DNA from: Klebsormidium nitens | Taxonomy: Eukaryota > Plantae > Klebsormidiophyceae | Assembly: GCA_000708835.1 (NCBI GenBank) | Contig: DF236951.1 | Span: forward strand, 434,101 to 498,100 | Length of the DNA stretch: 64,000 nt | Reading direction: 5' to 3' | In this document: piece by piece, positions 13,701 through 60,498 of the stretch | Layout of the letters: every line of letters begins with the position of its first letter | Position numbering within the stretch: position 1 is the stretch's first letter | The notes under the pieces: generated by a model | Databases searched by the model: none | Told to the model about the DNA's origin: nothing | What the model saw: the letters and a program-made list of their open reading frames with translations, nothing else | Program-made: the position numbers and the translations under genes

Positions 13701-16700
13701 GCTGCTGCCCGTGCGCATCGAAGCGCCCATCAGCGTGCCGATGAAACGGTACCTGGGGGAGCAGCGGGAGCGTTACAGCGGGATATCGCGGGCCCGATCA
13801 CATGCCAATGACACAGCACTCGGGGGGAAACCGTGAGGGCTTCCCTGGTTACGGTCATGTGTGACATGCTACTTTTACAGCTTGTGCGTTCTAAGTTGCC
13901 GGCGACAACGAACCACAGAGAGTACCAAAAGCGTCGGAAAATTCAACACTGCTGAAAAGAATCTGTACGGTCTATCCACGAGCGCCCATAAACAGTCTTG
14001 CGAAAGACAGTAAGAGCATCCCAAAGTTTGGAAACGCTGGATGTGCTAGCTGCTCTGCAGATTGATCAGGTAATCCTCCAAACTCAAAGCACACCAACAA
14101 TCAAACCACAGAGAGGAGGAATTTGCAACATCTTTGATTATTCGAACGCCCGCACCTCCTCATGTGCTCCCAGCTGGTGCAGGCTGGGTTAGGGACCCAG
14201 GTGTCGCGATTGAAGCCGACGTTGTTCCGTCCGTTGGGGCACTGGATGAAGAGCGGAAGCGCATCGCTCTGCAGCTCCGCGCACGCATCGTGCAGCGACT
14301 CGCGGAACAGTCCGCCGTGGTCGGTTCCGCCCTCTCCTTCGAAGCTGCAACCGAGCGGAACGGATCAGAGACTGAGCGGAAGATGAAAACAAGCGGGAAA
14401 CAGAGACTGAAGACTTTGGCACACTCTTTTGGTGATTAAGGGTGCGCGTTTTGTCACCTGATTGTAATTAAAACTTTACGGAAGATTATGACTGGCCCAA
14501 TGGTCGTCAAAGTCAAAAGGGGAGGCTTATCCAACAATTTTCTGCAAAAGCCCTGAAACGGTCTCCTTCCATGCGGGCAAACGCGTTTCCAGCCAGGACA
14601 GAGAGCTAGGAAGAAACTGACATTCGCACAGATAAAATCGCAGGGAATTGATCAGCAGATTGCGTCAGCACTTCGTCAGTCTTACCTGACCAGCCACGAC
14701 ACCAGCCCCGTCCCTTTCGCCTGCGTCCTCCTCAGCGAGTGCCGCTCCAGCCCCGCAAACAGCTGCCCAAAGACCGAGTTGTTCCCGTCCTTTGGCCCCG
14801 GTTTGCTGTTCGCCGCCGTAGCGTGCGCCCGGTTTACGACAACCGACGGCACGTCCCCGTCTTCGTGCATGAGCGCGACGCCCCGGTCGATCATCTGCGC
14901 CTTCGTCTCGGGGAAAAGCGGACCCTTGGAAGTCGCCAAGCGGTGGGCGGTGCTTGCGGGATCCCCCACCAGTCGCAGATCGATCAGCGGCAGAACCGGC
15001 TTCGCCATGCGGTTCAGCATCTTGAGCACGACGAACCGGTCCCGGAGCGCGGTGCGCGAGCGGCGACTCAGCAGCATCAGCTGCGACTCCGCGCTGACCT
15101 GCCTGGTCGCCGCGGCCGTCGTCGCCGGCCCGGGCTGCACCTCCTTGTCCGCGATTTCCGGCGCGCCGGACGGGGCACGTGCCAGGACGGATTCGGACAG
15201 GTCCTCCTCTCCCTCACTCCCAAACAAGTCGTCCGGCTTCAGAAGCATTGGGGTTACCCCCCGAAGGGCCGCCCGTTCACACACGTACAGAACCAGCTGG
15301 GCGTCCATTGCGAGCGACCAGTGTTCATTCTCCCACCCACTGCCCGGTGTAACTAGACTGCGGCGAGACTCGCCGGACCCCCCGCGCTGCCGTTCGTGGG
15401 TGTGAATGTCCTCCGCGACTTTCGAGAGCCGCGCCGCGGCCGCTCGAAGCGTGCTCGCGGCCGCGGCCGCGGACGGAGGCAGCGCGAGCGGGGACAGCAG
15501 GTTGGAGTTGCTGGACGAGCTGCCCTCTCCCGCTTTGGGGGGCCGGCCGTCGCGCGAAACGCCCCCCCCGGCGGAGTAGCGCGCGCTCGGGACCCGGCTG
15601 TTGGCGCGCCCCTCGGCCTCGCGCGCGCGCTCCTCCTCGACCACGTGCGGGTTGTTCACGAGCCACGACGCGGCCGCGCTGACGTCATTCCCGGCAATGG
15701 CCAGCGCCTTCTCCGCTGCCGCGAGGGGGTACCCTAGAGCTGCCAGCTGGCGCGCTGCGTGCTCGATCCCCGGGTCCATTCCCCGCCTCCTGTGCCGGCG
15801 CAAACCCCCGCTGCTCCCGGGCTCGGAGTTCGCTTCCGACTGCCCGGCTGTTTGTCCCCCGGGCGCGATGTGGGCGAAGGTATGGCTGGCAGACGCGATT
15901 CGGACGGCGCCAAGAACAGACCCCCCGGCCGCGAAAACGACCCCCGACGGAATGTCGTGGAAGACCTTCGCCATAATTTCGTCGTTCTTGGAGAAGCGCA
16001 GCGTCCCGTCGTCGGAGTCGAAGTGAACCCCGATCCTGTCCCCAGTTGTGAACGGCTTCAGCGAGGGGTGCTTCTGCCACTCGCCCTTGACCTTCATCCG
16101 CCCCGTCTGCGCGAACAGGCCCCAGGCCTCCCCGTGGTCGCCCAAATAAGTATTCACATCGACCCCGTAAGCGGCGACCCCGACCAGGCACTGATCATTC
16201 CCGACCACCTCAAACTCGATGCTGTACAGTCCAGTCCCGTGCCGCATCTCGCTACTGCACAGAACCGTCGTCTGCCCCCCAAACAACACTCCTTTGAAAC
16301 CCCCGTTGATATAGTCGGTCAGCTCACAGCCCCGTCCAGCCTGCGTCGGATCAAAGAACACTTCCACCGATTGCGTGGTCAGCGCCTGGGTTCCGGCCCG
16401 CCCCTCGAGGATCGCGACGAACCAGTCCGGTAACGGTTCCATCTTCCACATGGATTCCAGGAGCTCCACCAACCGGTTGTAGCTCTGCAGCCAGTCGGGG
16501 CGCGGGAGGGAGGCCAGCGTGATACCCAGTTGGCCGTCGGCGGTCTTCGGGTCCAGCGGAGTGTTGCGGTGCTCCAGAATGGAGCACAGCTCAACCAAGG
16601 CCTGTCATCCGAATCTTGGTTAGCTTACGTTTGTCACTGGAGCCAGCTCATTGTGAGTGGCCATTCCGTGGGAGTAAGGGTCTTTTTAACGAGCGTCAGT

Positions 16701-19700
16701 TGACGGCAAAATTTACAAAGGATCTGACCATCTGGCATCGACATTATGTAGTTTGAAGGCGTCATTATGGCTGCGAGGAAGAGGCTGGCTACTTTGGATC
16801 ACGGAAAGGCTCCGTCGAAACAGCCAGAGGGTAAAGAAATAAATGATGATGTGCACCCTCTAAAAGCGCGAATAGTTTTGCAAAGCGATTGCTTTCAAGC
16901 TTGGGGAGTAGGAAACCAAAATTGAACATGAGTCACGGCTTTCTGACCTCACAACTCACAACCAGATTACAGCAACGTTTGATCAGAACTCAAGCACCTT
17001 TCAGCAGCACAGCTACGCAGCCCCCAACGAGATGACCAGAAAAGCAGCGGTACTTGCCATAGTCACATCAAGCACACCTCAACAGAACCGACGTCATCAT
17101 CTTTTTCGAGGTGCGGTTTCCAAGCAGCCCGCGTTCGCCCCTGGCCTCACCTGGAGGTACGGCGAGAAGAGCACGCGGCTCTTGCCCACGTTCTTGCGCT
17201 CCATCTCGTGCTGCTTCAGCATCGCCCGGTACATCAGCCGCACGGCCCTCTGCGTCCCCTCGGACGGCGCCAGCGTGTCGCCCTTCTCCGCCCAGTTGAC
17301 CCCCTCGGACAGAGTGCGCGCGAGCGCGCGCAAGAGTCGCGTGCGGCACGGGATCGGGAGGCTCGGTAGCGCGCAAACCACGGCCTCGAGCAGCGATGAA
17401 GTGCCCGGGGGGACCCCCCGGGCCGAGATGACGCCCAGGACTGACGTCACCAGCCACTCGACATAGCCCACGTGGACCGCGCCCGCGGCCGCGGCGTCGG
17501 CCTCGCTCAAACCCGCCAAACCCTTGCCGCTCTCGTCGGCCGTCGGGCGCACCACGAACTTGTACCCGTACGCGGTCTCGCTGTCGTCGCTGACGAACTC
17601 CAAGTGGAACGTGTTTTTCGGGATTTGTAACTCCTGCTCCCAGCACGGACCGTTCATCCAGTCGGAGAAGATCTGGCCGTTGATCCGCAGCTCGTCGGAG
17701 TTCCGCTCCACGGAGCACTTTCCGTCGAAGTGAACGGACAGCCCGGTCGCGCCATTCAACGTCACGTTCTCCAACCCCCGCTCGTTGTCCGTATACTCGT
17801 GCAGCGACTCAAAGGTCACCATCTTGATCGGCTGCGCGGCCGCGGCCGCGGTCGGCGCCCCGATCGCCTCCACGGTAAACGCGTAGCCCCACTTTTTGGG
17901 TCCCCGGGAATCCGTTTTGATCTTGTAGTAGAACGAGCTCCCGTTGATGATGAGCGGTTCCGACCACATAGGAGCTGCGGGCTCGTTTCCTTCCGCTTTG
18001 CCCGAGTTGTAGTCTTTGAAGCACACGCGCAGCGGCGGGGTCGCCCTCCTGAGGCTGGCGGAGTCCTTGAAAAAGGCGAGCACGTCGGCGCCGGTGTTGC
18101 AACGCGAGTTGAAAGTGACGCGCAGATGCTGGGCGCCCAGAATGCGGACCTGCGGACACAGGCCAGCGGGATCAGTCTTATACTACACACCGAAAATTTG
18201 CGACGGTATTTATTGCTACAGGTTAAACGAGCTTTGTGAAAAGGTCACCGTATCGTCTGGGTCCATTTTGCGGGACAGCCGTCTGAAGTGCGGATTCTCC
18301 AGGGAGACGGGACGCCGGAAGTAACTTCAAATCCAGGCGGCGGAATAGGAGTCAAAAATCAGCCGCGTTTGATCGAAGGTTGAGATAGAAGACCTTGTTG
18401 TACGAGTCCTTCACACTGACGGGCCTCTATGACTTTGAATTGGCTGTCAATCCAGAAATTCAGAATGAGCAGAAGTGCTGAGGAATTATTCCTGGAAAGA
18501 AATCAAACATCCACGTCAGAAGAAATTTCCATTGGTGATTCAAGTGGTCTTGCAACTTCCCTATAAACCTGAAAGTTGCTGCTGGGCCAGATAACCTGGA
18601 AGGAGGCGTAAACTGAACGGCGGTCCTGAGTACCACACTGCTGAACATCTTAATTATCCAACCTGGAGTCTGCGTCTTGCTTCTGAGAATCCTCTGTTCT
18701 GACTCTTCCCAGCTGCACGCTCATCGACTTCCTTCCCAGGAACTTTGGCAAATATTCCTTAGAACCTCCCTTCAATATTGATCAGGATGTTGTGAGTTCA
18801 ACTTGCTTCCAGAAAAGTGAACTTTTCCCTACTGCAACCAACAACTGGAAGCCAAACTCGGCCTTCCCACCTTTCGAATGACCCGCTGGGCCGCCTCGTA
18901 CGGATGCTGCGACTCGATCGTCACAGAGTTCACCGCGGGCGCGTGCGCGACGCCCCCGCTCTCCACAATCTTCTGCAGACTCCGTTCGCACACCCGGCTC
19001 AGCTCCTTGAGAGTCGCGTCCGCTTGACTTGACCCCAGAGTCGGGTCCCCGCTCAGGCTCTGCAAGCTGCCAAACGCCTGGCCCCGCTTCTGGGCCCACG
19101 CGGTAAACAGCCGGTTAAGGGTTCGGGTTAGCTGCTTGGGCGACGCAGCCGCGGCGAGGTCGCGCACGCGCGGCCGCTGCTTCGAGTCCGCCGAGAAGAA
19201 CATGGGGCGCGTCACCGCGAGCAGCTCCGTGACGGTCAGCTTTCCGGCGGATTCCGGCTCCGCCTCGAGGTAGCGGAGCAGGGCGAGGCGCGAGTAGTAG
19301 ACGAAGAGCGCGTCCTCCGCGGCCGCGACTTCGACCGCGGCCTGCAGCGGGTCGCGCACCGCCAGCTGCTTGTTGGCATACGCGGCGTCCACCCAGCTGG
19401 CCTTCTCCGCTTTTGGGTCGCCCTTTGACACCCCCCCGGACTCGGAACCGCTCCCGTTACTGCTGCGGCGCGCGTGCCTCTCTTCCTCGTCGTGAGTGTG
19501 AAGCGCGCCGAGTTTCTCAAACGCGGGGGGATCTTGTAACCACTCCGCGAGTTCCGCGTCCCCGCTTTGGGGGGATGCAACGCTACTACTGGACCGCCTC
19601 CGCCGTCCCCCTATTTTCTGGTCCTCCTCTTTCCGCCCCTGACTCGTCAACCACTGCGCGGCCTCGCCAAGATTCCCGCCAGCTTTGATCACGGCCCGCT

Positions 19701-44427: not shown

Positions 44428-46887
44428 CGTCAGGTCGGGGTCAGATGGTGACTTTGCAAAGAAAGAGCAAGCTCGCGTAGGAACAGGGAGAGGTATGAGT
44501 TGTCCGCACGAGAAGGACGCCTCCGCTAAGCTCGTGTGAGCTGCAAGAAGCCGTCAGCTATTTTCACGTTGCAACAGAGTCCGTCTACTAGTCTCTAGCA
44601 TGTTTTTGGGAATAAACGCACCTAGCTTATACTGAGGTACTTTAACCGGCCGGGCTGCTCTGCCCCCCGAGCTTATACAGCATGTGTAGACACGTAGCTG
44701 AATAAGTCTTTTGGAGGAAGAGTCTGAATAGTCCTGTTCAAATGTAATATGGGCTCCTTGCTCCTTCGATATTGGTGATTCACAGAGAATAGCGTTTTGT
44801 CGTCTCACAATACGATGTGATACGGTGTCATTTGTTACCGTGAAGCGAACGAAGAGGATGTGCGGCACTGACGCGCTTATTGTTTCAAGTGGGCTTGAGT
44901 TGCACGGTGGACTCAGCGCCGGCACAAGTCACTTTCTGGCGGATCCGGTCGACCTGGAGCGTCTTTGAAGGCTAGAACATGGCATTGGTTTATCTGCTGC
45001 GCAGTTGAATTTTGTTAACAGTGTTCAAAACTAAGGGCATGGCCCGGCGTACTAACCTTCGAATCCTGCATGGGCCGCGCTTCGTTTGTTCCTTAGGACC
45101 GGATGCATCAGTTTGTTGCAACCAGACTCACGCACCTACATGAAACGTGGCAGCCGGTTTGAGCATCAATCCGATCTTTCTTTGTACGTACGAGCACATT
45201 AAGTTTGTCGTTGTTCTTGCTATGTTATATGTTTCGTGCCACCATGTGGGATTTACGTGAGGGTGGCACAAACACACGAAAATGTTGGAATCGACGATGC
45301 ATAGCACAAGAGCCTGGCATCCTCGGCGCATGCGCAACTTCCCCATTCCTCTCAAACCACGGAGATTCACGGGACGCGACGGTCATGAACCCAGCCTTTG
45401 CATAGACGTTATATGCATGTTGCTGATTCCAACCACAGGCCGCCTCGCCGATGGCCAGGCGTGGATCGGACCTCTGCATGCAACCTTGGGACCCTTGAAT
45501 AATTATGTTCGCTGCCGCAGTGCATTAAACTTTCCATTCATACGAATCGGGCCAAGTTGTCCATTTGCTTTGTCGGCTGAGATCTGATCACGATCGTTAC
45601 GATGCGGCAACTCCTGTGGTTCAATAAGGCCGCTCTGAACTCAAGCCGTTATCCGATCTGAATTTAGAGCGATTTAGAAACAGAACTCTGTACGGAAGCG
45701 GGTTACTGTGCACGTACGTATGGTTAAGTTGGCCTTAGTCTTGATTCGGGCACGCATGGTTTATGATACAGTCATTCTGATAGTTTTACATTTCCTTAGT
45801 ATAACTCACGTGTCAATTGGGTAAAATACATATATTCAATTGGATTAGTGCGAAACCAACAAAGGGCATCAAATCGTATCTGCTCCTGACTTTCGGGGTC
45901 GGTCAATCAAACAACACCCCCTTAGGTCCTGTTGGAGCCCCGCTTCTGTCGTATAAGAATCCAAGTCACGTACACTCATAAGGCAGTGCTGCCATTCAAA
46001 GCCACTCCAGCCAGTCCCCGCCGAAGCCCCTTTGCTGCGAGGAAAAAATAACGCTTCACTAAATAGCTGCTGGCGGCCAGAATCAGCACAAAGAATCTGC
46101 GCAAAACGATCATCGGCCGATCAAGCCGCATCAGATCAGAGCCGGGCAGACGGATGTACTCCGAAGCGAAGAACGATATGTATGCCAACGTCTGCTGAAA
46201 TTCAGTCGGTCCTAAAAACGACATACTGTTTGCGCTTCGAAGGAGTCAAGAATTTGACGCTGACATACGAGCAGTCAGGGACCTCGGATTACTTTTGCCA
46301 AAAGAGTAGAGAAGCTGACAGACACTATGTGTTCTCGTTTGCTAACTTGAGCGTTTGAATGGTGCTCAACACCGGATCTTGATCAGCTTTTGCGGAAGAA
46401 TGAAGTGAACACTGAAAACAAACCTAAAGCAGCATGAACATTAGTATCCAGCTTCGACGACTTGGTTTTAAAGTGGTCAGGTTGAACCCGCACGAAGGCA
46501 AGGTTTCAAGCCCACTCGAGAAAGTACCCAGAAGGCGCTTCTTATCAGGCAGACTCTTGCAGTCGGGCCGCCCACGTTAAACACGCCCGAAAAGCTTATT
46601 AAGGGATCTGGGCCTGAGATCGTTATGCTGAAACCCGGAACTCCCAAGTCGCCGAGTTGGCTAATCCACCTCAGGCAGGGGGCCTGCCGCCTAACTTCTC
46701 AGCCCCCCACAACTCTCGCGAACTGAGTGCCGTCGCAGCAAAACGGAAAATCGAATGCACACGGGCATTGCTTAGCTTGGCTTCCTTTTGAGCTCAATCC
46801 GGGTGATGAAAAGCCTTCTCTCGAATCCGCATTGAGTTTGACGGTGAACTCTCACCCTGAAAGGAACTCCAAGCGCTCAGGGCAGCG

Positions 46888-47018
46888 CTAGCACGCCGCC
46901 TTGCACGTGCCGCTGCAACACAGCTTCCGGTCGGCCGGGCAGCGGAGTCCGTTGAAGTCGTTGCAGTTGGGGCACACCTGGTTGCCGGTGTGATTGACCG
47001 GCTTGTTCGTGCACTTGC
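46888..47018 (-). CDS. E18: terminal exon with the first 8 Cys of a module, then stop
   Basis: ttgcag|GC-KCTNKPVNHTGNQVCPNCNDFNGLRCPADRKLCCSGTCKAAC*; the TAG immediately follows C8. Confidence 0.88.
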
Positions 47019-50000
47019 CTGCAATGTGCACCGTTGGATTGCGTTCAAAGAAAAGCAGGTTCAAATAGTCCACATTTAAGTGACCGTTCCCACCAGGGGC
47101 GATGACAGTCCCTTGCTGGATCGGCACCGTTTTACTGAGGTCAGCTTACTGTGCATACTATCGAAACCACTTCAAATTTCTCAGCGTCGCGTTTTACCGA
47201 GTGTTGTCACTGTCATGACGCCTCCGCTGCTAGCAGACAGTCGCCAGGAAACTTCGAAAGAGCATCTGCGGAACTCCGACCATTCAGAACGCGAATTTCT
47301 GACATGGGCAAAGAAGTGACTGGGTGATAGGCTGGACGTGTACGGGTACCGCACCCCGCTGGATTTGAAGTTAGCACGTTAGTCCCGTAACCCAGAATTA
47401 CTGAGTGGAGCCACACCTTAGAACAAGGCCAACCACTTACCGATGTTGCCGCTGTTCTCCTCAGTGCAGCAGAAACCGGTGGGGCAGTCACTGGCATACC
47501 GGCAGTTGCAATCACCGGTGTTTGCTGCGCAGTCTCCCAGCGGACAGCGCATGCTCTTGCCAGCGGGGCAGCTCGCGCCGTTGAAGTCGTAGTTACAGTC
47601 CTGACACACTTGTGTCCCGTTTGCCAGGACGGGCGTACTGGTGCAGACGCCTGCATCGACAAGTCTCTCATTTAGGCCGGTGTTGTATCAGACCGCTCCC
47701 CAAGGCTGAAAGCAACTCAAGCACGAAACCCGAACTCAAAATGCTCCGCACCGTGCCCACTATAGAACCCCAAATCAAACGACCCCAACCGTCCCCAAGG
47801 CACTGATCCCACTTAATACAGTCGAAAGTCAACGTAGAATTGATACTACGTTGCCTGCATTTAAGGGCGCAGAACCTATAATGGTGATCCGTACCAACTC
47901 AGCATTTAGCAATCATATCATTGCGGGATCTAAAATTCAAATAATGAGCTTTTATCCTACCTCCCTGAGGAGCTGTTGGGACGAAACATGCTAAATCGCC
48001 GAGAGAAAGCGATAGCAGTTTCCATTATATTGCGGGCCAGTCTCGATGGTCTTGAAGGGCCCTCCTAAGATTCTCGGTTTGTACACTGAGTAAACGATTT
48101 GAAAGTTGCTTATCCCAAAATGGGGCCCCAAAATATCAATTCCAAAACGCAGTTAAACATCGAAGGGAGCGCAAGAGCTGGAGGGCTGGCACCCTACCAA
48201 AGTCGCCGGTTCCCCGGGCCGTGCAACAATAGCCGGGGCGACAGTCTCCATTATACTGACACTTGCAAGCGCCATCACTCGTGGCGCAGTCCCCAAAACC
48301 GTAATCGCAGCACACCGGCTTGGATGCCGGGCAAGCGGCGCCGTTGAAGTCGTAGCAGGCCGGACAGATTTGCGTCCCGTTGGTAAGGACGGGCGTGTTT
48401 GTGCAGACGCCTGCATCAGCGTCTGGGCTCATGAGCCTTTCGAGGTAAGCACACGCCAGTATCGGATGCGTTCCAAAGTGCGCATTCGACCAAGACTCCG
48501 GTTTGATTCTGCAATGGGCCGCCGATCCGACTCGTCTACAAAAGATGTTTTCTTTGGCAATCAAACATCTTGTATCGAGACAGCTTAATTCTACCCAGAT
48601 TCCAATCTGGCAAAATCGACCGTCCCTGCTTGGAGGCTCGATCCCTTTCTCTTGAGGGGCTGATGCAAGACATAAGGGAAACTTCGAGAGAGTCGCTAGA
48701 GTCCCAGTCATTTGATTGCACGCCAGCCTCGTTGGTAGTGAAAGGCGCTTCTAAACCCTTTCAGCCTTTTCTTCAGCAAGCGTCCAGAAAGATCGAAGCC
48801 CAAGATTTCACAACTATGTTCAAACATCTGAGGTCCGGATGGATTGCCTACCGAATTTGTCGCTGTATTCCTCAGTGCAGCAGTAGCCGGAGGGGCAGTC
48901 AGCGGCCCAATAGCACTTGCACGCGCTCTTACTGGCGGCGCACTCCCCGTAACCGGGGCAGCACACCGGCTTGGATGCGGGGCAAGCGGCGCCGTTGAAG
49001 TACTTGCAGGTTGGACAGACTTGCGTTCCATTCGTAAGGACGGGCGTGTTTGTGCAGACGCCTGCATGCATCAGCAGCTAGGATCATGAATCTTTTAAGA
49101 TAACCATCCAACAATGTTCGGAGCGTTTTGAACGCGCGCGTCGACTTAATTGATGTTTGTAACATCCGGAATGGGCTCCGAAAATGACTCGTTCAAGAAA
49201 GAGACTGCTCCCGGGTAATCCAATATAGTCAGCCTGGTCAACTCAGTCAGTCCTTTGTCAGTCAGTTTGGCAAAAGCATCATCCGCCGTGCTCAAGGAGG
49301 CTTGGCTCTGTCCTTTGAGGGGCTGATGCTGGACAGAAGCTGGTTGAAGGAGAGTAGCGAAGAGGTTTCATGTGATTGCACAGTAATTCGTTTGGTCGTG
49401 AAGGGCGCTTCTGAAACCTCTCCGGCTTTGGAAATGATCAGCATGCAACCGAAAGTACACGAACCCACCGTTCCAATATGAAGCGCTAGAGGCCAACTAA
49501 CCTTGCCTTGTTCAAAGGGCTAAACCCAAAAGAAAAGAAGCGCACAAGGATGGACTACCCACCAAAGTTGCCGCTATCTTCCTCCGTGCAGCAGTAGCCG
49601 GAGGGGCAATCACCAGCCGACTGGCACTTGCAAGCGCTCTTACTGGCAGCTTCCCCATAACCGGGACAACAAACCGGTTTGGATGTGGGGCACGCGGCGC
49701 CGTGGAAGTCGTAGCACGTTGGACAAACTTGCGTCCCGTTGGTAAGGACGGGCGTGTTTGTACAGACGCCTGCATCAGCGGTTGGGCTTCGAGGTAAGCA
49801 GACAAAACTGTTTGGTGCGATTCAAATGTGCGCGGGCAACCCGGGTTAAACCTCTGACGTTTGCCAAAGGGCCCCTGAAAACGACTCGTTCGAGTCAAGC
49901 GTTCTCCTAGGTGTTCCAACCTGGCTAACGAACCGTTTTGATCGCTCTATCAATCAAAGTTGGCATAAGCATCCGGGTTGTTGTTTGTCTCCTAAGGCGC

Positions 50001-53000
50001 TGATTTGGACACATCTAAGTGCGCGCCAGCGTCGCCTGGTGTGAAGGGCGCTTACAAACTCAGTGCTACCAGGATACACGAAGTGGCTTTCAAGTACGAG
50101 GCCCTAGAGTCCCACAGCCTTGTTCGAGAAGCTAAGACCGGAATAAAAGAAGCGCAAGAGGATGGGTTGCCTACCAAAGTTGTCGCTATACTCCTCAGTG
50201 CAGCAGAACCCGGAGGGGCAGTCAGTGGGCGACTTGCACTTGCACGCGCTCGTACTGGCAGCGCATTCCCCGAAACCGGAGCTGCAGCACACCGGCTTGG
50301 ATGCGGGGCAAGCGGCGCCATTGAAGTCGCCGCAGGTTGGACAGACCTGCGTCCCATTGCTGAGGACGGGCGTGTTTGTGCAGACGCCTGCATCAGCGGT
50401 TGGCTCATGAAGCTTCTGAAGTATCAGTGAAAGTGTTTGGTATGTTTGAATGTTCGCAGGCAACCTTATTGAGCTGACAAACGTCTGGCAGTGGGCTTTG
50501 AAAACGGCTCGTCCGAAAAGAACAATTCCTACCGTAGGTGTTTCAACCAGGTCAGCATCTAAATTGCGCGCCAGACGGTCAATCAAATGGCCGTGAAAGG
50601 GGCTTGTGAACTCCCACCACTTTTGAATCATCAGATAAGCTAAGACACAGAACTTGACACGGCTATCCAATATGAGCCCCCCGGATCCCACAGCTTTCTT
50701 TGAAAGGCTGAAACGGAAGTAAGGAACGCCGGAGGTCACTTCTTTCTTCAAAGCCCCCGGAAGAAGTTGGCAAACTCCAAACATATTTCTTCACGAACAG
50801 ACTCCTGGACCCCCACAATGACCCACAACGATGAAGATTGCTTTCATGCGAAGGATTCTTGTAACCTTGATCTGATGAGAAGGTAAGTGTGCCAAATGAA
50901 CTGCGGAATTTTGCAAGCGTGGTCTTTTCTGATCCACCCCAAATGTACTCTGAAATTAGTTTCCTTGAGTTTCGATTTCGGTGTCTAGTAATCTCTTGAA
51001 CATTGTCCTGCCGTTCGTAGGTACCTGTTACAACACGCCGATCCTCGCAAACGGCACACAGATCTGCCCGGAATGGAGAAGAGAACGGGACCCGAGAATA
51101 CGAGTTTCGCGCAATTGGGCCGCCGATGATCACAAGTTTTTGGTCTACAAGGTCATCAGCATGTTCGGCAGCATTTTCGGCAGGCCAGCCAGACTCAAAG
51201 CTCTTCGAAGCCAGAAACTTGAAGTACGTTTGGCATTTAACGGGGGTGTAATCTAACTCACCAGGCGTGTTATCGTACTCGTGGCTGCAGCAGTACTTTG
51301 ACGGGCAGTCACCGGCGTAGGAACAGGGGCAGGAGGGTGCCGACTCGACGCACTGCCCCAATGCGCAGCACGCTGGTTTGTTGGCGGGGCAAGTCAGCAC
51401 ATCCCAATAGTTGCAGTCCGGACAGACCTGATTGCCACTGCTGTTGAAGGGGTTGTTTGTGCACTTCCCTGGAAGGACACGCTTCTCTTAGAACTGGCAT
51501 GTCGGACCGAGCCCAAGACAATGCAAGTAAGGAGACTCGTATGAAAGCAGTGTCGATTGTTCGAAGACACCACCTCAAGGGGGAAAACGACAAGTCTGGA
51601 ATCATACACGAAGCCCTTTGAGGCTTGGATCTGGGTGGACTGGTCTGTTGTTGGTGCGTTCATAACGAAAATCTGATAGTGCGCACACAAGACGTTGTCG
51701 TAGCACCCATCCATAGCGTTTTCTTGAGATAGCAGCTTAGGATTGCAGGTCACTGTATGCTTGGAACAAACGGCAACCATGTTTACTCGTAGAGTATACC
51801 AGGATTGGGTTCCATCCTTTCAAGTTTGATTGGCGGCACTGAGTTGCAAGTACGGATCCAAAGTGTACAAAAGGACAACCAGACACCCACTTGCAAACGC
51901 AGCTTGACCGTCGCGTCATCAAGTTGATGGCTCAACACAATCACAACCGACATTCAAATCTTACTTCTGATCGGACTCGCCGGACTTAATCCACATTACA
52001 ACGACCCACCTGTTTTGCCGGAATACTCTTCCGTGCAACAAAAGCCGGAGGGGCATTCGTAAGAAAATCGGCAGGTGCACCCGGCGTTGTTTGCCGCGCA
52101 CAGCCCGCTTGGACAGCACACCTTCTTGCTAGCCGGGCAGCTGAGCCCGTTGAACTGGTTGCAATTTGGGCACTCCGTTGCTGAAGAAGCCCGTGCTCGA
52201 GCAGTATCCTGGACAAGAAAGTCGGATGTTAATTGCGCGCATGACAACCAGATACAAATTGTGAGGAACCCTGGAGTCCCAGTTCGCGCACAGAGGGAGT
52301 GCTAAGGGCTCTTATATCTTGCACGCATTATAGCAATTGAGCAGAGTAGGTTTTCATCTTCTAAGGAGGAAACTTCGAAAGTAGCGATTTCGTTGACCAC
52401 GGGTATGTTACGTTTTTCCGATAAGAACCGAGGACAACGACGCACTTTAGAAACGTCGTGACGGTGCCTTTCTTCAGCTGAAGGAATAGTACGCTCCTCC
52501 TCAAGCAGAGCTGATTACGCATACAAACACAATCAGGATGATGGCCAAGGATACAAGTTCTTGCGGCAAAGGGGCGGCTTTGGCTTAGTACGGACAAACT
52601 GAGCGGACAAGGAGCGTAGAAAGGAGTCCGTCCATTCTAGTATAACGTGGCTACTCGACCTTGCTTGAAATGACACGAACAGACACCTCTACACCTTGAT
52701 AGACATGTCAAGCCTAGGCCGAATTCCCTCCAATATATGCAGATGACTCCCGTAAGAGACGCTCACCGAGTTTGCCACTATTTTGTTCGGTGCAGCAACC
52801 TTTGTTCACGCCGCAGTCCGAGGACGATCTGCACCTCTTCAAAGGAGGTGGAGGTGGGGCCTGGCGCGCGGGGGGGGGATTTGGGGTATGGAGAACCGCG
52901 GGTGGAGGATTCAGCTGGGGGGGTGGTGGGGAGTTTTTGATTGAAACTGGTGGGGGAGGCACGGGGCTCCGAGGTGGTGGGCGCCGAATAGAAGGGGGCG

Positions 53001-56000
53001 GGTTTGCTTTGACGGGTGGAGGTTGTGTGAGCACTGCTTTTGGCGGGGGGAGAACGCTGCGCGGGGGAGGGTTCAGCAGTGGGGGCGGGCTTTTGGTTTG
53101 GGGAGGCGGGTTTGCTTTGACGGGCGGAGGTTGTGTGAGCGCGGCTTTTGGCGGAGGAGGGGCGCCGCGGGGGGGAGGGTTGAGCGGCGGGGTGGGGTTT
53201 ATAATCTTGCTTGGCGGGCTAGCTTGCGGTGGGGGAGGTTGAGAGAGCGCGATTTTGGGAGGAGGGGGACCGCTTAGAGGGGGAGGATTGCGAGGTGGGG
53301 GTGGGTTTTTAGACGGTGTTGGGGGAGAGGAAGAAGGCACGGGGCTCAAAGGGGGGGCCATTGTCGGACTGTTCGTGCACTTCCCTGCGTTCACACCATT
53401 GACATCTCAGTTGAAGCAAGACAAAGTACCAACCGTGAGGACTTATTTTTCCAAGGCGATGCTGACTTTTGATTTAACACCGTTTCAAGTAATCGAATCA
53501 CTTTGCATAGAGTCACGAGCACTCCGTTCCTTGAGTTGCATCTTACTGAGACTTTTCCTATCATAAGCCTTCCCTGATGGCAAAAACGAACAGCGGGAGA
53601 ATCCAGCTTTGATGCAATCTGGAATGCGTTTTTAACGAGGATGGAAAATGTAATTAGGCGGTCAACCGGGACGGTACGGGTATCCGCAACCGTTTGGCTT
53701 TCAAGTCGGCGAGTTCCAGTATTCCAGCAACTCCAGAAATTGCTCGCAGAAGCCACACCTGATGACACGGCCATTCGCTTACCGATGTTGCCGCTGTTCT
53801 CCTCAGTGCAGAAAAAACTGGGCGGGCAGTCACTGGCATAGCGACAGTTGCAGCCGCTGGTGTTTGCCGCGCAGTCTCCCAACGGACAGCACATGCTCTT
53901 GCCAGCGGGGCAGCTCGTGTAGATGCAATCATGACACACTTGTGTCCCGTTTGCCAGGACGGGCGTGTTGGTGCAGACGCCTGCATAAAACAATCTCTCG
54001 ATTAGGCCTGTTTTGAGATAGATTGGTCCCCCGGGCTGAAACAACTCAAGCACAAAACCGGGATTTGAGATGCCCCGCACCGTACCCACTATAGAACCCC
54101 AAGTCAATTAACCCCAACCGTCCCCGAGGCACTAATTCAATTCAATTCAGCCGAGAGCCCCTGAGCTCGTAGAATTGATACAACGTTGCCTGCATGAAAG
54201 GGCGCTAAACCTAATCTGGTTGATCCGCAATCAATCTTATCAGTAGGGGATCTGAACTTTTGAGTAACGAGCTTTCAATCCTTCCTCCCGGAGGCGCTGC
54301 TAGGACGAAACGAAACATGCGGAATAGCTAAAGAAAGCGGCTGCAGTCCCGTCGAATTGCGGGCCAGTCTCAATGGGCTTGAAAGGCCCTCCTAAGATGC
54401 TTCGTTTGTACAATCAGTCAGCGATTGGAAAGAGGCCTACTCACTCTGGAGCCCGAGAATCTTAGCTTTGAGCAACTGAAAATGAAAGGGAGCGCAAGAG
54501 AGTTGGCAGCCTACCAAAGTCGCCGTCCCCAAGGGCCGTGCAACAGTAGCCGGGGGACAGTCTCCGCCATACTGGCACTTGCAAGCGCTGTCACTTGTGG
54601 CGCAGTCCCCGAAACCGTACTTGCAGCACACCGCCTTGGATGAGGGGCAAGCAGCACCATTGAAAGTAGCAGAGTAGCAGGCCGGACAGACTTGCGTGCC
54701 GTTGGTAAGGACGGGCGTGTCTGTGCAGACGCCTGCACCAGTGGCTACGCTCGATCATGAATCTTGTGGATTGAGCACACGACATGCTCGATGCGTTTTG
54801 AACGTGCGCAACCATCCAGACTCGGCCAGCTCCATAAGTTAACTGCCACAACGGCGCAAGTAGCCGACTCGTCTACGAAGGTTTTCTTTTTCGCCTCATC
54901 TCGTATTGGGTTCGCCTATTACTATCAAGAATCCAATTTTGCAAAATTATCCTGCCCTGCTTGGAGGCTCGATTCTTCCCTCTTGAGGCGCGCCCTAATG
55001 CTGGACTGCTTTAACGAAAATTCAGGAAGAGATACTATCTAGAGTCTAAAGCATCTGATTGCGCGCCAGCCTAATTGCTAGTGATTAAGGGCGCCTTCAC
55101 ACCCTCTCAGCCTTCGCACTCCGCATGCGATCAGAAACATCAAAATTCATCTTACAGAAAGAAGACTCCGAATCCCAGAACCATGTTCAAAATTTCAAAA
55201 GTTTGAATAAAAGGAGCGCAAGAGGATTTGTTGCCTACCAAAGTTGCCGCTTTGTTCTTCTGTGCAACAGGAGCCGGAGGGGCAGTCACTGGCCGAATAG
55301 CACTTGAATGCGCTCTTACTGGGCGCAGCACACTCCCCATAAGCGGAGCAGCACACCGGCTTGGATGCGGGGCAAGCGGCACCGTTAAGGTCGGTGCAAA
55401 ACGGACAGATTTGGGCTCCGGTGCCAGGGTCGACGGGCGATTGGGTGCATTTGCCTGTGAAAAGGAACACTCCGTTTCGCAAAACTCTTGACGGTTCCAC
55501 TTTTAGCAAATGGCCTGCGCTGCAGGCGCCTGATGGCTTGCAATGAACCAGTTCATCTGAAACGGCCAGTATAAATGTCCAAACGTGCAATCCAACGTGG
55601 TAGGAGTACTGATCAGTACTGAATCCTATCGCAACATTCAGTATTCGATGGCGCGTCAAAACGGACGGAACAACGCGAACTCCGTTTATTTTCCCCCTTA
55701 AGAACGAGGACGTGCTCAATGATCATCGGCCTAAGTGCGCTAACCGGACGGAGATCGAGATCCGGCGATCCTGTTGGGCAGGAGGCAAAAATGGCGCTAA
55801 ACGTCTGAGATCTTAAGCATTCCTCTTATTTTTCCTTTCGTCAAGCTACTTCGCCGCAGACAGATTCTTACATAAAATGCAGAGGATCATCGGCCTTCAG
55901 TTTGAAGGTCAACTCCATGGTCCAATTCAATCTTTCGAACATGCCCTGATTATGGAAGCTTCAAACGGTATTCACATCTCAACATCTTCTAAACTCCAAT

Positions 56001-59000
56001 AACCAGGTAAAAATGGTGTCACTATAAGATAGAACTCTGTTTACCATCATCCACACATTTGCAACAGACTTTGTGAGCACGCCAAAAACTTACCAAGCTG
56101 GCCACTCCCCTCCTCGGTGCAGCAATACCCAGACGGACAGTCGAATGCGTACTTACACCCACAATCTGTGGGGCTCTTGGCGCAGTCTCCCAACAACGGG
56201 CAGCACGTTGGCTTGGATGTCGGGCACTTGAGACCGTTTAGGTCCTTGCAGTCTGGGCAGATCTGTGTGCCGTTTGCGAGGATCGGCATGTTGTAACAGG
56301 AACCTACGAACGGCCAATAACAAAAATCAAACAAAAATCATTGCCCGGGTCTCGTTGGTTTTTGTTTCCTGTCTGCAGGGTCTTGAAGCATGTAGAAGGC
56401 AGTCTTACCAAGCATGCCCAAACAAAAAGCAGAGGAGAGCGAGCAGTCACTAGCCAAAAAGGTTCGGAACTTGCACTGAGGATGAACAAACGACAGATGG
56501 CGGCTCGAATCCAGACTCAAGTTTGTACATTTGAAGAGAACAGGTAAAGTACGCTCGAATAACGAGTCCCAAGTTTTGACCACAGATACCTCCTGCACGA
56601 TTCTGGGTTGGCCAAGAAAAAATTGCTTAGTGGGATCCTTGAGCTCTTTCTGGCTATCTAGAAACATCTACCTATTGAGTAACAACTTCATCGTGCCAAA
56701 AAGGTTCGACAGTCCGCAAGACAAGCAACCAGGACAAGTGCAGCAGAGTCGGTCCTACAGATGCTACGGATGATATAGACGAAGAAGAGAGAAGTGGACG
56801 CTTGAATCGTTAGTACCGTGAGTACTGCCATTTGGGTTTGAGTCACCTCCGAGTCACCAAATCTACACAACACCTTGTCCGAGCTTAATCGCATCCTTTG
56901 CGGGGCGCCCCTATAGCAGGTCATCAAGACATCAAAGTTGTCCATAGCGAGAAATGTGAAGGACGTTTGGCAATCGAAGGGGGTGTACTTAAGCTCACCC
57001 AGCATGTTATCCGACTCGGAACTGCAGCAATAGTTTGAAGGGCAATCACCGGCGTAAGAACACGGGCAAGAGGGTGCCGACTCAACGCAGTGCCCCGTTG
57101 CGCAGCACGCTGGTTTGTTGGCGGGGCAACTTAGCACATCCCAATAGTTGCAGTTTGGACACACCTGCTTGCCGCTGCTGTCGAAGGGGGCGTTCGTGCA
57201 CTTTCCTGCAAGGATGGTTTTGCGTTTTTAAAAAACCACGTTGAGATTATGGAAACGTATTCCAGAAAGGAAAGCCAAATGAGGATGTTGTTGATGGACG
57301 GATTAGACACCAATCCAAGGGGGTTGACAACAGTCAGGGACTCCTGAGTGACGACCTTCGAGGAAGCATAATGAATGGGAAAGCTTGAATTTGGGGTTCT
57401 AATATATCGGTGCGTCTCAAGCGGATTGCTGATAATGCTCAAGCGCAACTACGTTGTCGTAGCACCCATCCGCAGAGTTTTCTTGAAGCCAACAGCTTTT
57501 GTATGCAAATCGTGTGAGCTTCCAAAGCATCGACAGGGATTCTCGGCAACCCATTCTACCCCGTGAAGTGCATCAAGATCGTGTCTCGTCCCTTGATCGG
57601 ACTACAGGAAAGGTCCAAAGTGTATAAGGGACATTCAGACACCCAGCCCGACCATCACGTCATCAAGTCGATGGCTCTACCAGTCAGAAGCGGACCTTCA
57701 TTCTCACTTCTGATCGAACTCGGACTCAACCCGACGATACAACGACCCACCTATTTTGCCGGAATACTCTTCCGTGCAGCACAAGCCGTATGGGCATTCG
57801 CCAGAATATTGACAGGTGCAGCCCGCGTTGTTTGCCGCGCAGAGCCCGCTTGGACAGCACACTTTCTTGCTGGCCGGGCAGCTGAGCCCGTTGAAGGCAT
57901 TGCAGTTCGGGCACTCCTGGGTGCCGTTGCTGAAGAAGCCCGTGCTCGAGCAGTATCCTGTAGAAGGTAGAAGAAGAGTCGAATAGCAATAGCGCACAGG
58001 GTGATGAGATACAGCAGGGTAATCAGTTCCAGCTGATAAGCAGGCCTAGGGAGTTCCGATTCCCACGCAAAGCTAGCGCTGAGCAAGAACTTGCAAAAGC
58101 ATAACAAATGAAGGAGTTGCTTTTGAACCCTTTCAAGCAGACCTTGAAAATTCTGATGCGAGGAAGTTACATCGGATCTCGACGAGACGCAGGAAACACG
58201 GACGCCCTTTGAAAGTTTGTACCGAATGCCTGGTGGCGTGTCTGACATGTCTACATCAAATCAAAACGTTCTGAATTTGAGGCTTGGAGAATAGCAAGCT
58301 TCACTCCAGGCACAGCTTTACTTTATTGCACATGCAAGTGGATTACTATATGGCTGAAGTGATAACTCCTCATCGCCACAAAAGGGGCGACCGATATCGG
58401 CTGTCTAGAATGATGTAAACAATACAGTCGGATTGAGTTGACAAAGGTGGAAAGAAGATCGTCCGTCTCTGTACAACGTGGCTATTCGGCTTCGATTCAC
58501 ATGACAACTCGAAGGCAGATATACTTCTTGATACATATGTGCAACTTCAGAAATGGTCCTTTGGAGAATATCCAAATGACCCTTGAAAGACACGCTTACC
58601 GACTTTGTCGCTACCTTGTTCGGTGCAGCAACCTTTACCCACGGGGCAATCAGCGGTGGATCTACACCGCTTAACAGGGGGTGGAGGTGGGGCCGGGAGC
58701 GATAGGAGAGGAGATGGCATAGGGGGAACATTGGGTTGGGGATTTACGGGGGGCCGTATTGGGGAGGTTCCTGCTGAAGCTGGTGAGGGAGGAACGGGGC
58801 TCTGAGATGGTGGGCGCATGATCGGAGGAGGCGGGATTGCCTGAGGGGGCGGAGATTGTGCAAGCACGGCTCTTGGAGGGGAAGGGGCGCTGCGGGGGGG
58901 AGGGTTAAGTAATGGGGGCGGGCTTTTGAACTGAGGTGGCGGGGAAGATGCAGCGACGGAACTTTGAGGCGGGGAAGCCTTCGGCGGGCTCGCTTGAATT

Positions 59001-60498
59001 GGGGGGAGGTTGAGAGAGCGCTACCGTGAGAAAAGAGGGATCGCTCACAGGGGGAGGAGACTATGGTGGGGGCAACTTCTTCGACGGAGTTGGGGAAGCC
59101 GAAGAAGGCACTGGGCTTTGAAAGGGGGGAGGATTGGGCGGGGGGGTTTGAGGGACGAAAGGAGGAGGGTTAGCTTGAAGGGGGAGAGACTGAGACAGAA
59201 CAGATATTGGAGGAGGGGATCCACTTCCGAGGAAAGAGTTGACCTTCGGAGGCGGGTTCGTGGGCAAACTTGGGGGCGAAAGGGAAGGCGCGGGACTGTT
59301 GGAGGGCGGGGGAGACTGGGGAAGGGGTGGCGGGTTGGCTTGAATTGAAGAAGGTTGAGAAAGCGGTAGCATGTTGAGTGTCGGAGCGGAAGAGGGCGAA
59401 GCGGATTGAGTTGGGGGGGTGGAGCTTATTTTAGGCGGCAGGTTGGTGTTAGGGGTGGGAGATGAGGCAAGTCCAAAAGTCGAAGGAGGGGAGCTATTTG
59501 AGGGAAGAGAAGTTGAGGGGGGGCTGTTGAGTTGAGTAGGGGGGGTGGGCAACATGGTAGGTGATGTAGTAGGGGGGGTGGGCAATGTGGTAGGTGACGA
59601 TAAGGGCACAGCCTCAGGCGGCGGGTTACCATTCAAAGGGGGAGAGCCGCTGGTGCTAGTAGGAAGGGGAGTGGGAGTAGTGCTCGCAGAAGGAGAGAGT
59701 CTCGTCGAAGGACTTGAGGGTACGGAAGATTGGAGCACTGGAGTTGGGGAGTTGGCTTGCAAAGGAGTTTGGGCTTGTCCGCTTTGGGGGGGTGGGGAGC
59801 CGCTTGAAGCTGTACTTGAGGGGGGGGTGTAGGAGGCTGGGGTGTTGTAGGCGCGGTTGTAAGGGGGGGAGGCGAAGGGGAGAGAAGGCTGGTCCCCGGG
59901 GGAGGGGAAATAGCGGGAGGGGTAGTCACCGGAGGGCCTTGCAGAGGTGGGGGGCTTCCTGTAAAAGCAGATTCACAAAATGCTTTGATGCACTGGCAAC
60001 CAGAAGGTTTTCTTTGGGGTCACATGTAAGTTCTCTTCAGAGCGCAGATCTGCTTTCCAATAGATGAGTCCTTACAATCCAGTCTTTTCACAAGAGTAAC
60101 ATGCATGACTGACACAACTCGAGTTAAGCTTGGGACTGCTTGTTGAGTTAGATCAACAGTTCTAAGTCGACATAGAAAAAGTGTCAATAGTCAAGGTCTG
60201 AAAAAGTGCTTGCAGCAAGTTGCAGCAAGTTCTCATAACCGCACTCATTAGTTGGCTTATCTATGACTTAGTAGCTACATAGGGACCCCAGCACTAAAGT
60301 CATTGAACGCTTCACCTGGGCCATGATCAAACGTAGAAAATTCAAATTAGATTACTTGAACAGCCCCAGGCACTTCCAAGACAGGTGTCAACTTGCACGC
60401 TCACCTGTTGGTGGAACTTGAGCTGAGGCCAGGTTGAGCGAAGCGGCCAGGACGTATGCTCCCAGCAGCAGCCATACCCACATGGAAAGGGGCGCCAT
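46888..60498 (-). CDS. Secreted modular glycoprotein locus: signal peptide, Pro-rich (extensin-like) segments and a tandem array of 12-Cys knottin/hevein-like modules, one per exon. Several exons are disrupted (skipping or partial pseudogene).
   Basis: E1 encodes a signal peptide and ends in phase 1. All 15 internal exons on the minus strand start and end in phase 1 with AG/GT, and E18 ends in TAG. Joining only the intact exons (E1,3,4,5,6,8,9,11,13-18) gives 3141 nt, an open frame of 1046 aa. Confidence 0.8.
47441..47650 (-). CDS. E17: Cys module (paralog of E8; C5 changed to Arg)
   Basis: GVCTSTPVLANGTQVCQDCNYDFNGASCPAGKSMRCPLGDCAANTGDCNCRYASDCPTGFCCTEENSGNI; 210 nt. Confidence 0.87.
48198..48410 (-). 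CDS. E16: 12-Cys module (paralog of E7)
   Basis: GVCTNTPVLTNGTQICPACYDFNGAACPASKPVCCDYGFGDCATSDGACKCQYNGDCRPGYCCTARGTGDF; 213 nt. Confidence 0.88.
48852..49061 (-). CDS. E15: 12-Cys module
   Basis: GVCTNTPVLTNGTQVCPTCKYFNGAACPASKPVCCPGYGECAASKSACKCYWAADCPSGYCCTEEYSDKF; 210 nt. Confidence 0.88.
49563..49769 (-). CDS. E14: Cys module (C7 codon deleted in frame)
   Basis: GVCTNTPVLTNGTQVCPTCYDFHGAACPTSKPVCCPGYGE-AASKSACKCQSAGDCPSGYCCTEEDSGNF; 207 nt. Confidence 0.85.
50175..50387 (-). CDS. E13: 12-Cys module
   Basis: GVCTNTPVLSNGTQVCPTCGDFNGAACPASKPVCCSSGFGECAASTSACKCKSPTDCPSGFCCTEEYSDNF; 213 nt. Confidence 0.88.
51010..51069 (+). pseudogene. E12: inverted, truncated copy of the E5 acceptor and exon head
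   Basis: gccgttcgtag|GTACCTGTTACAACACGCCGATCCTCGCAAACGGCACACAGATCTGCCC on the plus strand is 58/60 identical to the reverse complement of 56255-56314. Confidence 0.9.
51262..51468 (-). CDS. E11: 12-Cys module (paralog of E4)
   Basis: GKCTNNPFNSSGNQVCPDCNYWDVLTCPANKPACCALGQCVESAPSCPCSYAGDCPSKYCCSHEYDNTP; 207 nt. Confidence 0.88.
52010..52208 (-). pseudogene. E10: paralog of E3 with an 8-nt frameshifting deletion
   Basis: 199 nt. CAACGG[CACCCAGG]AGTGCCC in E3 is CAACGGAGTGCCC here. Confidence 0.85.
52767..53384 (-). CDS. E9: chimeric exon - module head (GKCTNSP), ~170 aa Pro-rich linker and a 4-Cys half-module
   Basis: 618 nt open frame: GKCTNSPTMAPPLSPVPSSSPPTPSKNPPPP...LKRCRSSSDCGVNKGCCTEQNSGKL(G)|gtgag. 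Confidence 0.88.
53783..53980 (-). CDS. E8: Cys module (4-codon in-frame deletion; C11 changed to Phe)
   Basis: GVCTNTPVLANGTQVCHDCIYTSCPAGKSMCCPLGDCAANTSGCNCRYASDCPPSFFCTEENSGNI; 198 nt. Confidence 0.85.
54515..54732 (-). pseudogene. E7: Cys module with a 1-nt frameshift
   Basis: 218 nt. TGT-CCCCC-GGC-TAC at 54552-54556 is one base short of the CPPGYCC frame seen in its paralog E16. Confidence 0.8.
55239..55454 (-). CDS. E6: Cys module (C8 changed to Phe)
   Basis: GKCTQSPVDPGTGAQICPFCTDLNGAACPASKPVCCSAYGECAAPSKSAFKCYSASDCPSGSCCTEEQSGNF; 216 nt. Confidence 0.85.
56094..56303 (-). CDS. E5: 12-Cys module
   Basis: GSCYNMPILANGTQICPDCKDLNGLKCPTSKPTCCPLLGDCAKSPTDCGCKYAFDCPSGYCCTEEGSGQL; 210 nt. 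Confidence 0.88.
56999..57205 (-). CDS. E4: 12-Cys module
   Basis: GKCTNAPFDSSGKQVCPNCNYWDVLSCPANKPACCATGHCVESAPSCPCSYAGDCPSNYCCSSESDNML; 207 nt. Confidence 0.88.
57751..57957 (-). CDS. E3: 12-Cys module
   Basis: GYCSSTGFFSNGTQECPNCNAFNGLSCPASKKVCCPSGLCAANNAGCTCQYSGECPYGLCCTEEYSGKI; 207 nt, phase 1-1. Confidence 0.88.
   Translation of the reverse strand, partial: DTARARASSATAPRSARTAMPSTGSAARPARKCAVQAGSARQTTRAAPVNILANAHTACAARKSIPAK
58600..59958 (-). pseudogene. E2: long Pro/Ser/Thr-rich exon ending in a 4-Cys half-module; disrupted as assembled
   Basis: ttttacag|GA-SPPPLQGPP... There is a -1 shift at the G8 run (59820-59827), an in-frame TAG at 59061-59063 and a +1 shift at the G6 run (59001-59006). 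It ends VKRCRSTADCPVGKGCCTEQGSDKV(G)|gtaag. Confidence 0.75.
60405..60498 (-). CDS. E1: signal-peptide exon
   Basis: MAPLSMWVWLLLGAYVLAASLNLASA-QVPPT(G)|gtgagc has a hydrophobic core and an A-S-A cleavage site. It is too short to appear in the ORF track. Confidence 0.85.

Follow-up and report, generated by a model that had tools for sequence, protein, structure and literature searches.

Every second knottin-like module of a cysteine-rich green-algal protein is probably assembled across a splice junction

The 64,000-nucleotide (nt) stretch of Klebsormidium nitens contig DF236951.1 analysed here (the window) carries the multi-exon gene KFL_000020760 on its minus strand, from 60498 to 46888; all coordinates are positions within the window unless another locus is named. 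The gene probably encodes a chain of alternating knottin-like six-cysteine modules, A and B, in a register that runs from the ninth cysteine (C9) of one repeat exon to the eighth (C8) of the next, such that unit A is split by an intron and unit B is not. An initial annotation made from the sequence had placed unit B inside an exon and had assembled unit A from C9-C12 at the end of one exon and C1-C2 at the start of the following one, and this division was upheld by the array ends, by paired cysteine losses and by AlphaFold2 models. The product as a whole is probably, judging from its sequence, a secreted chimeric proline-rich (extensin-like) glycoprotein with two arrays of six-cysteine modules.

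We read KFL_000020760 as 17 exons, one fewer than in the initial annotation, where the numbering ran to E18. A signal-peptide exon (E1) and a proline-rich exon (E2) are followed by repeat exons E3-E8, a second proline-rich exon (E9), repeat exons E10-E16 and a terminal exon (E17). Every intron is of phase 1, has canonical AG/GT ends and splits a Gly codon one residue before C1: the exon end reads ...TTT G/gtaggc, giving the first G of the Gly codon, and the next exon starts cag/GC GTC TGC (slashes mark the splice sites). Repeat exons are 198-216 nt long (about 70 codons) and multiples of three, two deletion-bearing exons excepted. The exons are as follows.

E1, 60405..60498, minus strand: signal-peptide exon, MAPLSMWVWLLLGAYVLAASLNLASAQVPPT then the split Gly; phase-1 donor; exon and frame kept in the paralog KFL_003630080.
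E2, 58600..59958, minus strand: proline-rich (extensin-like) exon of 1359 nt, a multiple of 3; its tail is the N-terminal half of unit A only (KRC-RSTAD-C-PVGK-CC).
E3, 57751..57957, minus strand: 12-cysteine exon, GYCSSTG type.
E4, 56999..57205, minus strand: 12-cysteine exon, GKCTNAP type.
E5, 56094..56303, minus strand: 12-cysteine exon, GSCYNMP type.
E6, 55239..55454, minus strand: 11-cysteine exon; C8 replaced by F, codon within 55300-55311.
E7, 54515..54732, minus strand: frameshifted repeat exon of 218 nt; 1-nt deletion in the C run 54550-54558, with the break between C10 and C11.
E8, 53783..53980, minus strand: 11-cysteine exon; C11 replaced by F within 53805-53816, leaving unit A with C9, C10 and C12.
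E9, 52767..53384, minus strand: second proline-rich exon; head with C1 and without C2 (GKCTNSPTMAPP...), tail with C9-C12 only.
E10, 52010..52208, minus strand: frameshifted repeat exon (GYCSSTG type) of 199 nt; 8-nt deletion near 52168-52180, with the break between C1 and C2.
E11, 51262..51468, minus strand: 12-cysteine exon; first half of the two-exon AlphaFold2 target.
E12, 50175..50387, minus strand: 12-cysteine exon; second half of the two-exon AlphaFold2 target.
E13, 49563..49769, minus strand: 11-cysteine exon; C7 codon deleted, within 49645-49656.
E14, 48852..49061, minus strand: 12-cysteine exon.
E15, 48198..48410, minus strand: 12-cysteine exon.
E16, 47441..47650, minus strand: 11-cysteine exon; C5 replaced by R within 47542-47552.
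E17, 46888..47018, minus strand: last exon; C1-C2 and a complete unit B, then the stop codon immediately behind C8.

The spacing C1-x12-C2-x2-C3-x7-C4-x6-C5C6-x4..6-C7-x6-C8-x1-C9-x5-C10-x4-C11C12 is shared by 9 of the 11 in-frame full-length repeat exons, the deviants being E8 (C3-x4-C4) and E6 (C1-x13-C2). There are nine residues after C12 and two before C1, the split Gly entering both counts, which gives 10 residues from C12 to the C1 of the next exon. As this 10-residue stretch holds the split Gly, the intron sits in the unit A loop between the fourth and fifth cysteines, nine residues after the CC of every unit A. Read across the junction, unit A is C-x5-C-x4-CC-x10-C-x12-C, whereas unit B, C-x7-C-x6-CC-x4..6-C-x6-C, lies wholly within one exon. 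Each repeat exon thus begins with the final two cysteines of one A, continues through a complete B and closes with the first four of the following A. The linkers between units are the one or two residues of C8-x-C9 and C2-x-x-C3, in agreement with the initial annotation.

The ends of the arrays follow the C9-to-C8 register. E2 and E9 both end with C9-x5-C10-x4-CC only, and the last exon supplies C1-C8 and stops, as had been proposed and as can be read directly from the sequence. The same pattern was seen in relatives from four algal genera, found in a profile search of public proteins (matches are numbered from P0001, which is GAQ77715.1, the public product of KFL_000020760). Arrays begin at C9-x5-C10-x4-CC straight after the signal peptide in P0004, P0008, P0012 and P0014. 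They stop right after C8 at a stop codon in KFL_000020760, P0008, P0009 and P0010, and end after C8 before a domain of another, non-cysteine type in P0007 (twice), P0011, P0017, P0018 and P0028.

Cysteines were also lost in pairs across repeats. When C11 of one repeat was scored together with C2 of the following repeat, both were present at 83 of the 86 scorable junctions, both were absent at three, and none had only one of the two (Fisher p about 1e-5, the three co-loss junctions being related copies in Raphidocelis). Two further co-losses are independent of these: the replacement of C11 by F in E8 is followed by the E9 head with C1 and without C2, and the C-terminus of P0013 (...C-PTGY-G-C-ADGE-C) has neither C11 nor C2. 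Within unit B, C4 and C7 were jointly lost in P0007 (twice) and in P0017. Because the reduced units keep four cysteines each (C9, C10, C12 and C1 in A; C3, C5, C6 and C8 in B), each unit appears to form its bonds internally. These losses show, at the level of sequence, that C11 and the C2 of the next repeat are partners, the putative III-VI bond of unit A, and that C4 and C7 are partners, the putative II-V bond of unit B. The I-IV, II-V, III-VI pairing put forward in the initial annotation thus fits the losses for III-VI in A and II-V in B; we infer the other four bonds (C9-C12, C10-C1 of the next repeat, C3-C6 and C5-C8) and the knotted topology. The natural partner losses provide a testable disulfide map for the repeat family. 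Array ends and losses together show that the structural repeat runs from C9 to C8 and not from C1 to C12, displaced by a third relative to the exon. Domain annotations and recombinant constructs should therefore be cut at C8/C9 or C2/C3 and not at exon boundaries.

AlphaFold2 models were assessed by pLDDT (predicted local distance difference test), the predicted template modelling score (pTM) and strand assignment. A two-exon model of E11 plus E12 (P0001:941-1081, 45 two-repeat rows) had a pLDDT of 87.7 and a pTM of 0.67. It placed strands at 60-61 (C11C12 of E11) and 70-73 (G-V-C1-T of E12), a hairpin across the junction that mirrors the CC / G-x-C hairpin of unit B (33-34, 40-41). The last 20 residues, a C9-C12 tail with no partner, lacked strands and fell to pLDDT values of 77 and 68. 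Unit A alone (40 residues, P0001:988-1027, 69 rows) was modelled at a pLDDT of 88.3 with the same strands.

Several observations weigh against a chain of separate A and B modules. Two arrays are exceptions, that of P0004 with an end after C12 and that of P0007 with a start at C2, and the three Raphidocelis co-loss junctions may stem from one event. No disulfide was directly seen in the AlphaFold2 models. The partnerless head (C1-C2) of E11 still had a pLDDT of about 90 in the two-exon model, so pLDDT alone cannot decide between registers. Neither model had a significant structural neighbour by Foldseek (Protein Data Bank, PDB) or by VIA-align run wide. In KFL_000020760 itself E7 and E10 are frameshifted and E6, E13 and E16 leave unpaired cysteines, and no spliced RNA piece of the gene was found when four probable-RNA runs were compared over 46850-52800.

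The models also bear on whether A and B are separate modules or two halves of a single 12-cysteine domain in the same C9-to-C8 register, packing together or sharing disulfides. A and B are invariably found together in a constant order, their linkers are only one or two residues long, and the pTM of 0.67 for two repeats suggests a fixed mutual orientation. Moreover, hhalign of unit A against unit B gave a probability of 7%, and homology between A and B was thus not shown. However, the reduced units keep an even number of cysteines within A or within B, unit A folds by itself at a pLDDT of 88, and short exons of the paralog pair C9-C12 with a B-type C-terminal half with no full B between them. 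We consider a single 12-cysteine domain unlikely.

Fold searches gave knottins as the top Foldseek rows for the two-exon model (Magi4, EETI-II and MCoTI-II), none of them significant; the best knottin rows (2roo, 1h9h, 1w7z, 2it8 and 1qdp) had E values of 4.6-9.5, and VIA-align gave no Z of 2 or more. A shape search of the ESM Atlas likewise found no significant neighbour for either model. Very small domains seldom score well in such searches. The likeness to knottins (EETI-II, MCoTI-II, Magi4, robustoxin) lies in the six cysteines of the form C-C-CC-C-C, in losses that fit III-VI and II-V, and in the short antiparallel strands around the CC and the fifth cysteine in the models. Knottins are free peptides, whereas here the modules would be chained head to tail in a large glycoprotein. 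"Knottin-like", the term of the initial annotation, is a fair description of the cysteine pattern and the partner evidence but not a demonstrated membership, as no solved knottin was matched significantly.

For unit A alone the top Foldseek rows were the C-terminal domain of Dkk1 and robustoxin, again non-significant, which raises the question of whether unit A is a disulfide finger of the Dickkopf/colipase/prokineticin type in which the third cysteine pairs differently. Colipase-fold proteins pair III with a later cysteine. The C-terminal domains of Dkk1 and Dkk2 are the best unit A neighbours (Foldseek rank 1, with 33% identity and a query TM of 0.46; E 0.3-0.5 in a PDB sequence search with the unit A profile, over a 17-residue C-x5-C-x4-CC motif only), and the weak ESM Atlas rows include Dickkopf_N clusters. 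The C-x5-C-x4-CC opening is indeed common to unit A and these proteins, which have ten-cysteine domains and do not form tandem arrays. None of the matches is significant, unit A has six cysteines and not ten, and the co-losses point to III-VI; we regard a disulfide finger as very improbable. Membership in the Dickkopf or colipase fold was not supported by the profile matches, which had E values of 0.3-4 and covered the motif only, and six cysteines stand against ten. A branched-chain dehydrogenase row in the PDB sequence searches with the exon and unit A profiles was non-significant and was taken as chance.

That each exon (C1-C12) is an autonomous domain, with exon boundaries as domain boundaries and classical exon shuffling, is hardly credible: the exons are symmetric (phase 1-1), like those of mobile extracellular modules, and the E11 head was modelled at high pLDDT without a preceding tail, but arrays start with C9-C12 and end at C8 in more than 10 proteins, C11 and the C2 of the next repeat are lost only jointly, and the same protein repeat has its introns elsewhere in Edaphochlamys and Raphidocelis.

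The repeats belong to an undescribed cysteine-rich family of a few green algae which has no Pfam model. A Pfam search with nine exon peptides gave no family, only the sub-threshold matches Toxin_29 (E 0.019) and ATX_III (E 1.5), and a word-index protein search with one exon returned no candidates. An 11-exon profile run against 1.84 billion representative proteins gave 30 matches only, from K. nitens (three genes), Mesotaenium endlicherianum (at least eight proteins), Raphidocelis subcapitata (three), Edaphochlamys debaryana (one) and metagenomes. There was also a weak Peronospora match that may be unrelated. The named members looked up, that match aside, are all hypothetical, uncharacterized or known by a locus code only.

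The paralog KFL_003630080 has the same exon register as KFL_000020760. It also has 37-residue, eight-cysteine exons (E-C-x6-C-x-C-x2-C-x-C-x5-C-x4-CC), for example at 10403-10513, 12573-12683, 15723-15833 and 18862-18972 of its own locus, the first two cysteines of which lie at CC-x7-C-x6-C after the C9-C12 of the previous exon. As far as the sequence tells, these short exons would complete a start of the unit A type with an end of the B type and would thus be natural hybrid modules. They carry an additional C-x-x-C pair beyond the cysteines of the hybrid module.

Intron positions differ in the other algae. Edaphochlamys debaryana HYH03_019124 has two introns per repeat: the first, of phase 1, cuts a Gly two residues past C12, and the second, of phase 2, falls between C4 and C5. 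Both units are split there, and not all of these introns have been retained. The phase-1 intron occupies the loop that also holds the Klebsormidium intron, about seven codons upstream of the latter. In Raphidocelis, intron positions differ from repeat to repeat. Because the introns of Edaphochlamys and Raphidocelis fall elsewhere, the protein repeat is older than the Klebsormidium exon register and independent of it.

Modules split between exons are already known from progranulin, whose "CN exons" hold the last six cysteines of one module plus the first six of the next (PMC4527844). A rat progranulin splice variant lacking one exon was predicted to contain a hybrid granulin made of C's N-terminal half and D's C-terminal half, according to the passage of PMC1310530 that cites it. 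The split-module layout, including hybrids formed by exon removal, is therefore not new in principle. KFL_000020760 and its paralog have the same layout of tandem cysteine-rich modules assembled across splice junctions, and provide an independent second example of exon and module being out of register. In KFL_000020760, however, only every second six-cysteine module is split and the other lies wholly within an exon, unlike in progranulin. Granulin has 12 cysteines with four CC pairs in a stacked-hairpin fold, whereas the repeats of KFL_000020760 have two CC pairs per 12 cysteines. There is no sequence relation to granulin, and no Pfam granulin domain was found in the nine exon peptides. The novelty lies in the protein family and its confinement to a few green algae, in split modules alternating with unsplit ones and in the natural partner losses. 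In an out-of-register layout, an exon that is duplicated, lost or skipped causes hybrid modules to form anew, and whole modules are not removed.

Traces of such events are present in the locus. A block of about 6 kilobases (kb) is present in two copies, E2-E8 and E9-E16, with matching exon types, and the junction at which the E11 tail meets the E12 head is absent from the first copy. The E5-type exon is represented in the second copy only by an inverted fragment of about 75 nt on the plus strand (51011-51082), which is about 95% identical to the intron end plus the first 62 nt of E5 (from 56303 downwards). Contigs of the paralog also map to 51011-51082. Because all repeat exons are symmetric (phase 1-1), crossing-over in introns duplicates or deletes exons in frame. 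Unequal crossing-over in introns would thus add or remove units composed of the C-terminal half of A, a whole B and the N-terminal half of A, and each gain or loss of an exon would rebuild a chimeric unit A where exons newly meet. Growth of the array was most likely by duplication of the 6-kb block together with duplications of single exons. The initial annotation had argued that exon skipping would create hybrid unit A domains; for symmetric phase-1 exons the logic is sound, and the outcome of exon removal is seen at the DNA level in the E11/E12 junction of KFL_000020760. Skipping in RNA would have the same effect.

The duplicated exons have ratios of nonsynonymous to synonymous substitution rates (dN/dS) of 0.12-0.38 at dS values of 0.3-0.75, indicating purifying selection on them over most of the period after they were duplicated. 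Four exons have 11 cysteines (E6, E8, E13 and E16). E6, E13 and E16 are each short of one unit B cysteine without a compensating loss, whereas the loss of C11 in E8 is matched by the absent C2 of E9. The damage to KFL_000020760 could be of recent origin, could reflect an error of the assembly or could be circumvented by exon skipping.

The public model GAQ77715.1 sidesteps the frame breaks by skipped or shortened exons. It also starts at an internal ATG (60475) in another frame and lacks a signal peptide, whereas the ATG at 60498 opens a typical hydrophobic signal-peptide exon that is kept in the paralog KFL_003630080. SPPP, PPPP and PPPPP runs were read in E2 and E9. Both ends of E2 are in the signal-peptide frame, but across its middle (about 59061-59762) only a different frame is open. 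This suggests a pair of compensating shifts, small introns that are hidden, or errors in the assembly. The public gene model should be corrected.

In the four-run RNA comparison the matches were short pieces matching the paralog better and one low-depth contig of 233 nt (47539-47771), which crosses the E16 acceptor unspliced. The spacing of pieces within one contig fits exon-to-exon joining in the paralog and suggests that transcripts of KFL_003630080 are made and are spliced in the predicted way. Three studies supplied contigs of 336-429 nt (depth 21-179) that match the window only in short pieces, at 47461-47574 and 51020-51072, and their loose ends encode the paralog motifs CNLFNGLSC and CNRLNGLSC. 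Combinatorial exon use, in which regulated skipping that includes the two frameshifted exons would give many secreted isoforms with new hybrid A modules, seems highly unlikely. If true, splicing would serve as a system for diversifying a wall or adhesion protein.

The chain of A and B modules would be rigid by virtue of its linkers of one or two residues, and the array may serve as a rod in the extracellular matrix or cell wall. Chlamydomonas MST1 is an extracellular glycoprotein with a long rod-like cysteine-rich domain plus a hydroxyproline-rich polyproline II helix (PMC11015965). A stiff cysteine-rich rod beside a proline-rich stretch is a likeness to MST1, as a functional analogy only. A Foldseek search against solved structures to April 2026 gave no MST1 row for either model, the presence of an MST1 entry in the set being unchecked.

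Hevein (CBM18) lectins with extensin-like regions likewise combine a proline-rich region with C-C-CC-C-C modules, and the spacing of unit B resembles that of hevein. Hevein membership (CBM18, PF00187) was rejected: the nine exon peptides had no Pfam Chitin_bind_1 match at E values up to 10, and the units have six cysteines and not eight. Eight relatives gave no Chitin_bind_1 match at E values up to 0.01. After the CC the family consensus is CC-x-D-G-x-C, which differs from the aromatic chitin-binding motif of hevein, S-x-aromatic-G-x-C-G, the hevein sequences themselves not having been compared directly.

Two further architectures were observed among the relatives. Raphidocelis P0007 (about 430-480 and 1360-1404) and P0011 (about 325-565) share a conserved GKDVAKY-x-AFHEMF... 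segment after the C8 array end, for which no Pfam family was found. In Mesotaenium P0004 (ME000168S01796) a seven-repeat array (28-530) is followed by a proline-rich linker and then by a papain-type Peptidase_C1 domain (583-680, E 5e-29). Plant RD21-type proteases carry a C-terminal granulin domain; relative to these, the order of domains in P0004 would be reversed and the cysteine module is a different one.

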